In this document: positions 30,001-36,000 of the stretch, piece after piece
Numbering within the stretch: position 1 is the stretch's first letter
Layout of the letters: each line of letters opens with the position of its first letter
Assembly (NCBI GenBank): GCA_965112735.1
Contig: OZ218954.1
Span: 1,178,001-1,242,000 of the forward strand
Origin: Phaeosaccion multiseriatum
Taxonomy: Eukaryota > Protista > Ochrophyta, other classes
DNA length: 64,000 nucleotides
Direction: 5' to 3'
The notes under the pieces: model-generated
Seen by the model: the letters and a program-made list of their open reading frames with translations, nothing else
The model's database searches: none
What the model was told of the DNA's origin: nothing
Program-made: the position numbers and the translations under genes

Positions 30001-33000
30001 TCTGGGTTGGCGTCACGCCACAAACGGGCCTCCGCTTTGCGCTTCTCCTGAGAGCATGTAGGCAGGGCAGCCGGGCAGGTTTCCGGTTTCAGTTGTGAGA
30101 TGTGAGGTGTGAAAACAGGCAAGGGCAGTGAAAGGTATGCTCGTACAAGTATCCCTTATCCAAGGCACTTGCCCCACATACCCAATCCTGCCCACTTAGA
30201 TGCCCAACCCTGCCCACCTACATACCCAACCTCACATACCTGCATAAGGGCGTTGTTCTGAGCGAGAAGCGCCCCCTCCGCGGCCGGATCCGGCTCCTGT
30301 GCCACTTCCCATCCACTGCCATCCTCCCCCTCTCCCTCCCCCTCTCCACCTGCTGCTGCTGCTGTATCACCAACTGCTGCTCTCGGTGAGGGGCGAGGGA
30401 AAGCCGTGTCCCAGTTCCGGACGGCGTCGTCGACCCCACACTGAGCCAGATATGTATCCCACTTGTCCTCAATCAGAGGCTTCACCGCATCCTCTTGAAA
30501 CACCCGACGAGCGCTGCCAAACTCGGGCTTGGCTTCGAGGAGAGGCCACACGGCGTGCCCGCTGTGCATGAGGCGGTCGCTGGCCTTGTAGCTGAGCTGC
30601 TTGTTGATGGCCTTCACGGCTTGAGTCTCCAGGTGCTCTTGTTCCTGGGGTGTGTGTGTGTATGTGTGTGTGTGAGTGTGTGTGAGAGTGTGTGCGTGGT
30701 TGTGTGTGTGGGCGGGGGGGGAGGGGTGTTTGCCAAAGGAATGGAGAGTGGGGGTGGGCGAAGGAGGAGAGACGAGAGAGAAAGAGAGAGAGAGAGAGAG
30801 ATAAGGAGAGAGAGAGATAAGGAGAGAGAGAGATGGAGACAGAGAAGGGCGAGAGGAGGTCATGGTGAGTGGGTGTGGTGTGTGGTGTGACGTTCGCGAG
30901 GAGGCTCAAAGGACAATAATAATAGTCATAACAAGATCCCATGAAGACAGCGGTTAGAGAAGCAATACTTGTACGTATGCACGCACTCACGCACGTCGCA
31001 CGCGCACACTCACGCACTCACTCACGCATGGATCTAATGTTTGCTATTCGGTTGAACCCCACTCCAAATGAAGCGGAACCTCCCCCCAACGAAGAGGAAC
31101 ACAAACTTACCCGCTCGGGAAGCTCTTCCTGCGTGCACACCGCCTCCCCTCCCGAAAAGACGTACACCCCTGAGCCCACCAAGCGGTCCACCGTCTCGAC
31201 AACATGCTCAGACACCCACTGCCTGAGCTTGAACGGAGGCTTGCCTTGCCCCTGCCCCTGCCCCTGACCCTGACCCTGGACCGTTCCCGAGGCTGAGCCT
31301 GAGGCAGGCTTAGGACCGAGTGCAAGCTCTACCTTGCCTCGCAAAAGCTCCATCACCACTTCGCATTCCGTGCGATCTTTGTTCGCCATCAAGTCCGCCT
31401 ATGGAGATTGAGTTGGGGTGGAGGCATATGGGGAGTCAGGAGTGAGGGAGGGGGTCGGGGGTGGGTATAAGCATACGGGGAGTCGGGAGTGAGGTACAGT
31501 TGTACCCCATCCACTGCCATCCCTTATGACTTACCTCCAGCTGCTCATACACATCGAGTTCATGAGGATTTTCGATGAAGACGGTAGGGAGCCCCAAAGC
31601 CAGAGTGAGGAGGTCTTGCAGTTTGACGAGCTTCTTCTGCTCCTTGGCTGCCTCCTTGGCCGCCAGAGAGGTCTGTGGGGCAGGGTAGGGTAGGGTAGGG
31701 TAGGGTAGGGTAGGGTAGGGTAAGGTAGGGTAGGGTAAGGTAGGGTAGGGTAAGGTAGGGTAGGGTAGGGTAGGGTAGGGTAGGGTAGGGTAGGGTAGGG
31801 TAGGGTAGGGTAGGGTAGGGTAGGGTAGGGTAGGGTAGGGTAGGGTAGGGTAGGGTAGGGTAAGGTAGGGAAGGGTCGGGTAGGGTAGGGTAGGGTAGGG
31901 TCGGGCAGGGTAGGGTAGGGTATGATAGAGGGTAAGGTAGGGTAGGGTTAGGTAGGGGAGGGGAGGGCAGCGAGGGGGTGGGTGGGGCAGGGTAGAGGTA
32001 TATGGGCAGGACAGGACAAGAAAGAGAGGGAGGTGGAGAGGGCAGGGGCTTGGTCGGGTGGGCAGGTGACAGAGGGACATCGACAGAGTGAGTGAGAGAG
32101 AGAGGGATAGATAGATAGAGAGAGAGAGAGAGAGAGAGAGAAAGAGAGAGAGACCGACCGAGCATGGCCCGGTTCTCACCTGCTCCACCCTCTCTTCAAT
32201 GTCCTTCTTGAGCTTGTCAAGATGGGTCTTCTCCCCCTGTAGCACCACGCCCGTCCGCTTGATGGAGTTCTTAAGGCCGTCCAGAGCCGCCACTCGGGGG
32301 TGGATACGTTTGGCCAGCTGTGAATCGGGGGCATATAGGGTGAAGGGTAAGGTAGGGAGTCAATGGGGGGCGGGGAAGGGGCGAAGCGGGGTAAGGTGAG
32401 GGTGAGGGTGAGGGTGAGGGTGAGGGTGAGGGTGAGGGTGAGGGTGAGGGTGAGGGTGAGTAGATACGTATGCCTGCATCTACACACCCATCCCCCACAT
32501 GCTTCTACGCACACCCCATACACCTCTACCCACCTTCATGTACTCGTAGGCGGCTTTTAACAGGCGCACAACAGGCCCCAGCGCCTCTCCGTAGAGCTTG
32601 AGGAAGTAGCTGTCCCCGGTGTAGCGAGGGTCGATCACCAACTGCCCCACCTGCGCGGCCACCTGTGAGCGTGTGGGCGTATGTGTGTGCGTGTGTGTGT
32701 GTAAGAGAGAGAGCGGGAGTGAGAGAGCGATAGCACCAAAGTCAACATTGGAGATAGCCGGAGACAGATGGAGAGATATGCGCCTCGCCTGAGTACACTG
32801 TAGTACCATCAACCGTATAATGTGAGAGTACTCAAGAGAGACAGGCAGGCAGATGGATGGATAGAGATATAGATGGATGGATAGAGATATAGATGGATGG
32901 ATAGATAAGATAGATAGAGAGATAGATAGATAGATAGATAGATAGATAGATAGATAGATAGATAGATAGATAGACAGATGGATAGAGAGACAGATAGATA

Positions 33001-36000
33001 GATAGATAGATAGATAGACAGATGGACAGAGAGACAGATAGATAGATAGATAGATAGATAGATAGATAGACAGACAGACAGATGGATAGATAGATAGATA
33101 GATAGATAGATAAGATAGATAGATAGATAGATAGATAGATAGATAGATAGATAGATAGATAGATAGATAGATAGATAGATAGATAGATAGATAGATAGAT
33201 AGATAGATAGATAGATAGATAGATAGATAGACAGATGGATAGAGAGACAGATAGATAGATAGATAGATAGATAGATAGACAGATGGACAGAGAGACAGAT
33301 AGATAGATAGATAGATAGATAGATAGATAGACAGACAGACAGATGGATAGATAGATAGATAGATAGATAGATAAGATAGATAGATAGATAGATAGATAGA
33401 TAGATAGGTAGATAGATAGATAGATAGATAGATAGATAGATAGATAGATAGATAGATAGATAGATAGACAGATGGATGGATAGATCGGCAGATTAATTGA
33501 TTGATTGATTCACAACTGCCCAATTACCTTATCGGAGAGGGCTCTGGCATAAATGTCGAAGTCCGAATTGAGGCGGAAGACGAGCTTGCAGTCGTACGTT
33601 TCGTGAAGGGCCTCCTGGTCACCCATCTGGAGGAGTATGGAACGGAGCGGGGGAATAGAGGCATGGAGGGGGGAGGAGCAGGAGGGGGGAGGGGAGGGAG
33701 AGAGACAGTGAGAGAGAGAGAGAAAGAGAGAAAGAGTGAGAGGAGAACCAGGGCGAGAGTACGAGAGAAAGAAAAAGAGGGGAGAAGCAGGGACCAAGCG
33801 GGTGAGGAGAGAAGGAGGGGAGGGGCCATTCAATCAACCAGCAAGTCTAGTTTTAGTTCCCTCCCCCCCCCCTCCTCCACCCACCTGCATGTTCTGAACC
33901 GAAGTGTTGATGAGGTTCTGAGCTGATGGCCATGAGTCTCGCACCATCATAAACCAACAAAGTGTGCTCATCAACGTGGCAACTAGAGGAGGTGGTTCTT
34001 TGAAATTGCGAATGGCGAACCAGTCGCCAATTGTCAGTCCCTCCAGGACTTTGACGCAGGCTTCGAACTCCGCCTTGAGGTGGAGGGGGTCATCGATGTA
34101 GAACTGCTCGATTTCTTTGTTCGTCTTGTCGAGATGCGCCTGGAGAGCGGCGAGGTTTTGCTCGACTTTCGTAGTTACAGTCAGCTGCAGGGTGTCGGGA
34201 GGGGGGGGGGAGGGAGGGAGGGAGGGAGGGAGGGAGGGAGGGAGGGAGGGAGGGAGGGAGGGAGGGAGGGAGGGAGGGAGGGAGGGAGGGAGGGAGGGAG
34301 GGAGGGAGGGAGGGAGGGAGGGAGGGAGGGAGGGGGCAGGCAGTAAAGCTCAGTGCGAAGGGTGGAAAAATGCAGGCACGCCAGCCGCAAACCACCTCAC
34401 ATTCTTGCACTCGGTCAGATATGGCAACAAATGGCAACACATGGCGGCAAGTAGTACCAACACGCACACACCTGCGTCTCGTATTGGAGCCGCGCGCTGT
34501 CCTCAGCGGACTTTGCGTTGAGCAACCGCTGCTCCGCCTGAAGAGGGGAAGGAGGGGCGGGGGGCGGCGGCAGAGAGAGGGAGAGGGAGGGGGAGCGAGG
34601 GAGAGGGGGAGGGAGGGAGAGAGGAAGTGAGAGAGAGGGAGAGACAGAGGGACAGAGAGAGAGGAAGAAAGAAGGAAAGAGAGACATGCAAGTAACGTGT
34701 CCCTCCATACCCATACGCCTCCACCCGCTGCCTTATGGATCGCGCATACGTTCTCTCACCCGCCTACACAGTTTTTTAAGTCAATTTAATTGCCTCACTC
34801 CAAGCTCTTAAGTTCTTACGTAGTAATATATACCTCTTCCCGCTGCCTTACTCACTGCCCCACCACTCGCTTCCTTGCACCTCCCTCTCTCTCTCCATAC
34901 GCCTCCCATACGCCTCCACGTACTGCACCTTCATGGCAACGGGCTTGAGGTCGTCAATCTTCTCTTGTGTTTCCTTTATGGTGTCGCAGGCACAGAGCTC
35001 TCCGCTCTCTTCCTGGATGCGCTTGGTGATGCGAGCCACCCTGTCAGCAGGGAGGAAGGAAGGAGGAGAGAGGAGAGCAGCATAGAAGAGGGGATGGCAG
35101 TGGATGGCAGTGGATGGCAGTGGATTAGGGCAGGTAGAAGTTAAAGTCCATCGTCAGTCAGTGACCCACGGAGATGAGATGACTCAACAAATAGACATGC
35201 ACAAGGCCCTTGTTGTGGGGCTTGCGTCAATGCTTTGCGTCAATGCTTTGCGTCACTGCTTGCGTCACTGTTTGCGTCACTGCTATGTCTTCGTGTGGGC
35301 GTTGTTCATTCCCTCCCTCCTGTTCTTCCTCTCCTCCATCCCACCCGTCCTTCCTACTGCCTCCCACCTCCCCTCCCTCCCTCCCTCCCTTCAACTACCA
35401 TCCACTGCCATCCACGGCCATCCACTGTCACCTCGTAACTGACCTGGGGTCGTCTGGGTCCACCCCCTTGGGCATGAAGGGAAGCTTCCTCGCCACCATC
35501 ATGGCGTACACCCCGTCGAATTGGGAAGGGTCCTCTTCGAACAGTTTCACGAACTGACGTGACAGAGCATCGAGAGGAACGAGGGGGGTGAGTACTGGCG
35601 TTACAGAAAATCGAGAGGAATGAGGGGGTGAGTACTGGCGTTACAGAAAATCGAGAGGAATGAGGGGGTGAACACAGGTGGGTAAGGGGCTGTGTGTGTG
35701 CGCGTGAGTGCGCTTGTGTGGGTGTGTGTGTCCATCACAGGGATGCAATCAAAGCAGCCGAAGCGTGCTTCATTCCTTCAATCCATTCTACCTCTCCCCT
35801 CCCCTCCCCTCCCCTCCCCTCCCTCCGTCCCTCCCTCTTTCTGTATCACCAACTCCCCTACCTGCGATGTGGCATACGGATAGATCGGGGGAGTGGTCCA
35901 CTCCTGAAAGGTTCCCCTCTCCCACCTCCCTGTCCTGATCTCGTCCTCAAACTGTTCGTGCTCTGCGATCCAAATGGGCGTCTTGATGAGGAACTCTCCC

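Follow-up and report, generated by a model that had tools for sequence, protein, structure and literature searches.

Can the stalk and microtubule-binding domain (MTBD) of a dynein heavy chain be carried by a protein that has no motor? This question was raised by a gene on the minus strand of a 64,000-nucleotide stretch of DNA (hereafter, the window) from the ochrophyte alga Phaeosaccion multiseriatum, corresponding to positions 1,178,001 to 1,242,000 of contig OZ218954.1 (contig C5, bases 1178001-1242000) in assembly GCA_965112735.1. The window was G+C-rich eukaryotic DNA from a genome of 67 Mb in 22 contigs. An initial annotation, made from the letters alone, had described a dynein-like stalk module at 32180-35040, had seen no motor domain in the gene and had proposed that the stalk was reused as a static microtubule anchor. 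On the evidence of sequence profiles and a modelled fold, we concluded that this module is truly homologous to the stalk and MTBD of dynein heavy chains, that it has the full stalk length, and that it is carried by a predicted giant scaffold protein and not by a motor.

Homology of the module to the dynein stalk and MTBD

The module comprised 308 residues in seven GT-AG exons on the minus strand, running from 35040 to 31535. It was laid out as a helix of about 90 residues (the first coiled-coil arm, CC1), a globular head and a second helix of about 90 residues (CC2). The homology was assessed with a family profile, A1, that was built from 22 relatives and the window's exon and that included no dynein rows. 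When A1 was compared with all PDB sequences, dynein heavy chains took nearly all the top places (best E 9.9e-19), and the match to dynein consisted of two colinear stretches, namely CC1 with head helices H1-H3, and then H5/H6 with CC2. The first non-dynein match was tropomyosin (E 2.8e-4). To exclude a coiled-coil artefact, A1 was cut to the 141 positions of the head. The best 49 PDB matches of this head-only profile, A3, were all dyneins, led by DNAH6 (E 5.4e-10), and isolated MTBD constructs were among them.

The predicted fold pointed in the same direction. AlphaFold2 was run on the A1 alignment with the ortholog P0001 (residues 665-977) as the first row, so that the model represented a protein 41% identical to the window's module (P0002 was 46% identical). 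The model had a predicted local distance difference test score (pLDDT) of 91.7 and placed a helical head between two long helices (2-89 and 220-312). In a Foldseek search with this model, the best 50 PDB matches were all dynein stalks, for example 8i3j (E 4.7e-9, template-modelling (TM) scores 0.59/0.65) and 3wuq (TM scores 0.60/0.70). Thus, the dynein stalk pattern that the initial annotation had claimed was borne out by the full profile, by the head-only profile and, for the ortholog, by structural comparison with dynein stalks.

The exons followed the order of a dynein stalk. CC1 began in the exon at 34929..35040, where position 1 of the family profile was located and where A1 had an own-genome match, and it continued through the exon at 34472..34537, which had AG/GT borders, was in frame and aligned to the family profile. 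The exon of 100 amino acids at 33885..34184 encoded the end of CC1 with its DDP motif and the head helices H1-H3, which were aligned to those of dynein. It contained the motifs DWF..RNF and PPP and an invariant Trp, and it was matched by A1 in the genome at E 1e-36. The following exon (33528..33626) encoded the segment GD..AL..YDCKL, which matched the DK.nI region of dynein (own-genome match at E 3.1e-5); after it, the head had about 25 inserted residues that were specific to the family. Helices H5-H6, with the motif DPRY..DSY...G.A..., were encoded at 32534..32662 and were aligned to H5/H6 of dynein (own-genome match at E 3.3e-8). CC2 started in the exon at 32180..32317 with the junction proline (HPR) at profile position 241, and it ended, together with the exit of the stalk, in the exon at 31535..31672, inside which profile position 303 was reached.

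Exons from 35553-35444 through 31398-31111 formed one unbroken frame, with AG/GT at all nine junctions checked. The chain was colinear in tblastn with the orthologous proteins of Choristocarpus and Discosporangium, and relatives P0001-P0025 aligned colinearly on the window from 53314 down to 32516. The spliced window protein scored 302 bits against the family profile, covering positions 1-303 of 308. Accordingly, the peptides quoted in the initial annotation were all found to be encoded, in minus-strand exons 34184-33885, 33626-33528, 32662-32534 and 32317-32180 with AG/GT borders and a continuous frame. Its limits were correct for the start of CC1 at 35040 and too short at the other end, where CC2 continued into the exon 31672-31535. 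Within the genome, only this locus and true dyneins were matched by the family profile, so the gene was single-copy. The only sequencing runs that contained the stretch came from one study, were not recorded as RNA and gave no RNA support for the splicing; since these runs held nearly all sampled words of the intron-containing stretch, they looked like DNA. The introns of the stalk region (31690-31950, 32380-32450, 32850-33470 and 34190-34330) were almost wholly microsatellite, made of a GGGTAG-type hexamer, GGTGAG, GATA (about 600 bp) and GGGA repeats that were purine-rich on the plus strand.

Absence of a motor

In the genome's own dynein genes, stalks were flanked by PF12780 (AAA_8) and PF12781 (AAA_9). 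Neither family had a match in the window, and no frame of the minus strand from 26 to 64 kb contained a Walker A motif. Nothing motor-like was detected upstream of the window's end, where locus L020 held the first exon only. Moreover, Pfam reported no AAA families among the 18 relatives scanned. The claim that no AAA or P-loop domain was present in the gene was therefore confirmed from the sequence, and hence the stalk is motor-less. A 17.5-bit match to AAA_11 within the gene was spurious, as it sat on a poly-Glu stretch. On the other hand, the description of the module as a stand-alone stalk had to be revised: it formed a single domain within a giant scaffold of the LRR-IQ-C2-Ig-MORN type, where it lay between MORN repeats and a conserved helical domain.

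Proposed role of the module

The reading that we preferred, about evenly poised between belief and doubt, was that of a static microtubule anchor. The stalk is a hairpin whose two antiparallel coiled-coil arms have about 90 residues each; its length, as estimated from the helices, is about 13-15 nm, and a six-helix head homologous to the dynein MTBD forms its tip. The head would still dock on tubulin, and the stalk would serve as an ATP-independent arm that held the other domains of the protein at a fixed distance from the microtubule. The domains held in this way would be the IQ motifs (calmodulin-binding by family name), the C2 and MORN domains (lipid or protein binding) and the LRRs. As judged from its residues, the head resembled a microtubule binder only partly, and microtubule binding by it was plausible.

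The contact residues were compared position by position after the own-genome dynein stalk exons and the family had been aligned to one profile. Most of what they showed counted against the anchor, since three of the four conserved charged contact positions had changed and the H1 Lys/Arg alone was kept (Lys in 10 of 10 own dyneins, conserved in 22 of 23 family members, and Arg in the window). The H1 Glu, invariant in the 10 dynein pieces from the same genome, was variable in the family and was Ala in the window. At the position of the H3 Lys/Arg, which was present in 7/7 own dyneins, the window and most relatives had Gln instead. The basic residue that precedes the conserved Ser of H6 (Lys/Arg in 5/5 own dyneins) was out of register in the family; the Lys of the window stood one position earlier, and in one subclade there was a Glu. 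The insert of about 25 residues and the invariant motifs specific to the family could serve another partner. Additionally, the Pfam comparison that the initial annotation had suggested was negative at this locus: PF12777 (MT), with a gathering cut-off of 24 bits, had no match on the 100-amino-acid exon or on four further stalk exons, and a six-frame genome search with it listed about 17 dynein loci with the window's locus absent. The relative P0012 scored only 15.8 bits against PF12777, below the same cut-off. Finally, the structure that was modelled belonged to an ortholog with 41% identity and not to the window's own spliced protein. The uncharged landmarks were better preserved, as the PP motif and the H3 Trp were kept in the own dyneins, in the family and in the window.

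The lost glutamate can also be viewed from the side of the anchor. We took the H1 Glu position to be that of Dictyostelium E3390 from the description in PMC4298687, without an alignment to the Dictyostelium sequence. According to Uchimura et al. (PMC4298687), E3390 pairs with R403 of alpha-tubulin and couples binding to ATPase activation. Its loss would be expected where no ATPase remains to signal to, and it would fit an arm of this kind.

A possible but less probable explanation was that the fold was derived from dynein while the head no longer bound microtubules. In this case, the head would have acquired another partner in the cytoskeleton or membrane skeleton, or the hairpin would do no more than keep the MORN and W-rich domains rigidly apart. 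The changes at three of the four charged positions, the failure of the Pfam MT model to recognize the locus, and the invariant motifs GD..AL..YDCKL and DPRF..DSY together with the head insert were in line with such a change of function. However, the head was the best conserved part of the module, with a mean column identity of 46% compared with 34% for the whole module, and it still had the basic residue of H1, the PP motif and the Trp of H3. Moreover, the microtubule contacts of dynein MTBDs themselves vary between classes, as the title of PMC6629372 indicates.

It was unlikely, in our estimate, that the module worked as a regulated tether. Here a change at the base (in the MORN or W-rich domains, through calmodulin on the IQ motifs or through calcium on C2) would shift the register of CC1 and CC2 and switch the affinity for microtubules, as the AAA ring does in dynein. 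Both arms had the full dynein length and aligned colinearly to real stalks with only small gaps, conserved domains stood on both sides of the stalk base, and IQ and C2 occurred in the same protein, all of which would suit a switch. The window also had the CC2 junction proline, which was invariant in the own dyneins. However, this proline was missing in about half of the relatives (it was present in 10 of 21), and the H1 glutamate, which is tied to register signalling in the dynein literature, was lost. The CC1 proline of the DDP motif was displaced by about 5 residues from the CC1 proline of dynein in the alignment.

Origin of the family

By E-value, the closest class of dyneins was the DNAH6-type single-headed inner-arm dyneins, and among the dyneins of the same genome the DNAH6 ortholog fitted the family profile best. 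We then built a maximum-likelihood tree from 19 family modules, including that of the window, and 15 approximately spliced dynein stalks from the same genome; the short piece from locus L007 (see below) and family fragments below 290 residues were left out. The family was separated from the dyneins by one long branch (100/100), and the tree did not settle where this branch attached. The window was placed in a starred clade together with the brown-algal and Phaeothamnion rows. Thus, an origin from the DNAH6 class was favoured by the E-value ranks, but the tree did not nest the family there. The approximately unbiased (AU) test did not reject a tree in which the family was held with the DNAH6-like clade (p 0.24); with p values of 0.24 and 0.08 in the AU tests, this origin was neither rejected nor supported. 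The module could have been co-opted from an axonemal dynein and then have changed fast, or it could go back to an older split.

A more far-reaching view was that the dynein stalk and MTBD are an independent, portable unit that can work with no AAA ring. In that case, either the lineage would have split off before the dynein classes diversified, or a register switch gated by calcium and calmodulin would provide control of affinity without ATP. We regarded this as improbable. A deep origin was conceivable because the family lay outside all 15 own-genome dynein stalks (100/100) and its point of attachment was not fixed.

Finally, it was very improbable that the locus was the decayed remnant of a dynein, a gene model with wrongly joined exons or a chance coiled-coil likeness: its introns were long and filled with microsatellites and the genome had no RNA evidence, but the nine checked junctions were AG/GT in an unbroken frame, colinear relatives from several algal classes had the same architecture, the head-only profile found only dyneins among its best 49 PDB matches without the help of a long coiled coil, and the true dynein genes of the genome were located elsewhere.

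Relatives and their distribution

When the 100-amino-acid exon was searched with phmmer against 1.8 billion representative proteins, 41 matches were obtained. The best relatives were partial proteins from the brown algae Choristocarpus and Discosporangium and from Phaeothamnion. Further relatives were found in the chrysophyte Epipyxis, in a cluster to which the diatom Ditylum belonged, and in metagenomes. Family members, among them P0001, P0002, P0014 and P0016-P0020, were named 'hypothetical' or 'unnamed protein product' in the databases. Pfam identified LRR, IQ, C2, F5/8 type C, Ig and MORN domains in 18 relatives. A colinear core was common to all of them: about 335 residues of MORN repeats and linker, then about 310 residues of the module and, in sequences long enough to include it, a further domain of about 315 residues.

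Other searches added little to this distribution. A feature search of the ESM Atlas yielded a cluster mostly in haptophytes, which we considered as a lead only. A word-indexed protein search with residues 1294-1605 of P0016 returned only P0016 itself and one near-copy and was uninformative. In the ESM Atlas fold search, row 5 was a chlorophyte cluster named 'GAF domain-containing protein', 75% of whose members had Dpy-30; it aligned to the head over 139 residues with a root-mean-square deviation of 3.3 and a TM score of 0.38, which may be no more than a likeness of helical bundles.

The host protein

As predicted from its domains, the window encodes a giant non-motor scaffold with a conserved core in which MORN repeats are followed by the dynein-type stalk and then by a new W-rich helical domain. 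The whole host gene was placed at 26955..64000 on the minus strand, with a provisional 3' limit, and continued for about 620 nt past the high end of the window, so that its span was at least 37 kb. These limits were derived from Pfam matches on open segments and from tblastn of the relatives. The domain order was F-box-like/LRR_6, an IQ and Sfi1-like array, C2, IQ, F5/8C-like, Ig-like, coiled coil, MORN, stalk and MTBD, W-rich helical, an acidic tail and a possible WW domain. Pfam recognized LRR_6, IQ, C2, IQ and MORN on the open segments, where C2, at 21.8 bits, was just below the cut-off. The first exon, located beyond the window's end, was F-box-like by eye.

Directly upstream of the stalk, MORN-repeat exons extended over 35850..38083 on the minus strand and were colinear with the MORN regions of the orthologs. 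PF02493 matched at 36695-36393 (E 8.3e-19) and at 37701-37564 (E 1.7e-4). A conserved linker exon (35444..35553, minus strand) with AG/GT borders and 50-60% identity to P0001 and P0002 connected the MORN repeats to the stalk.

On the other side of the module, exons of the W-rich helical domain followed CC2 at 28064..31398 on the minus strand and were mapped by eye through motifs shared with P0001, with no tool alignment. The domain had about 315 residues with invariant tryptophans, was conserved in 11 relatives and was predicted by AlphaFold to consist mostly of helices (pLDDT 84.6). It had no PDB relative by sequence or by fold (best Foldseek E 0.1), and the idea that it was a decayed AAA5 was rejected on these grounds. 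Farther downstream, a WW-like segment at 26955-27527 on the minus strand reached 20.3 bits, below the Pfam threshold, and was a candidate for the 3' part of the gene.

Comparison with known systems

The window's family and the dynein stalk with its MTBD (PF12777) shared an antiparallel hairpin of the same length and a six-helix head. The common motifs included L..L...D, the H1 Lys/Arg, PP, the H3 Trp and the [DN]P.F loop, to which the window and about half of the relatives added the CC2 junction proline. In contrast to dynein, the family had neither AAA4/AAA5 at the base nor any other AAA domain, did not keep the H1 Glu and the H3 and H6 Lys/Arg, and carried the additional head segment of about 25 residues; the locus also remained under the Pfam threshold. 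To our knowledge, the stalk and its microtubule-binding head have been treated as an integral AAA4 insertion that is exclusive to dynein and owes the control of its affinity to the ATPase ring.

DNAHX and DNHD1 are heavy chains and keep their AAA ring. Like the window's protein, they are derived from dynein and thought to have a role other than motility, and the non-motile heavy-chain subfamily DNAHX (bioRxiv 10.1101/2025.01.18.633724) was the nearest described concept. However, nothing but the stalk and head survived in the window's protein, where they were inserted in a scaffold unrelated to dynein. Engineered chimeras of seryl-tRNA synthetase and MTBD reportedly bind microtubules with an affinity that is set by the stalk register. 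These chimeras (PDB 3err, 3j1t) join a dynein head and a short stalk to a non-motor base, which indicates that such constructs can fold, and they were the closest model for how the window's module would work. In comparison to it, they were artificial and short-stalked, with a canonical dynein head. In full-text searches of a collection of about 8.4 million papers and preprints, we found no description of a dynein stalk and MTBD in a protein that lacks the AAA ring, although such an absence is not proof.

With its complete stalk and head and no ring, the family offers a naturally occurring test of the stalk acting alone, including its register and affinity. Among the microtubule-associated proteins of ochrophyte algae it would be a new candidate class, on a scaffold rich in domains related to calcium and membranes. 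It also adds a data point on where the dynein motor came from and how modular it is. If the module had indeed split off before the dynein classes, this would bear on the source of dynein's own stalk.

Other dynein-type heads and side loci

Two further dynein-type heads were observed outside dyneins. The first was encoded on the plus strand of the same genome at C13:1266886-1267170 (locus L007, about 929-1300) and matched PF12777 at E 3.7e-14. It had no AAA_8 or AAA_9 match nearby, and it was followed by a glycine-rich low-complexity stretch in place of the return helix. The second was P0034, a metagenomic protein of 746 amino acids (on contigs of up to 678 kb) that was also matched by phmmer with the 100-amino-acid exon. 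It had five tandem dynein-type MTBD heads (PF12777, 4e-34) that were connected by basic linkers without stalk helices, and it looked like a distinct kind of motor-less MTBD protein. Unlike the window's family, these heads were recognized by Pfam and retained the H1 Glu and the H6 Lys. They were no closer to the window's family than the dyneins were. Taken together, the window, C13:1266886 and P0034 suggest that the dynein head was reused outside motors more than once.

Several other loci were noted in the same genome. At C11:3107690-3114029, AAA_8 and AAA_9 matches were found with no PF12777 match between them, which marked a dynein-like gene with a stalk that Pfam did not recognize. Additionally, the region C11:1756103-1765629 (loci L017 and L018) had two Tubulin_C matches with identical scores on opposite strands, one of which was read as an intronless alpha-tubulin gene. 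Between these two matches was an intron-split beta-tubulin gene in which one intron isolated a tiny exon.

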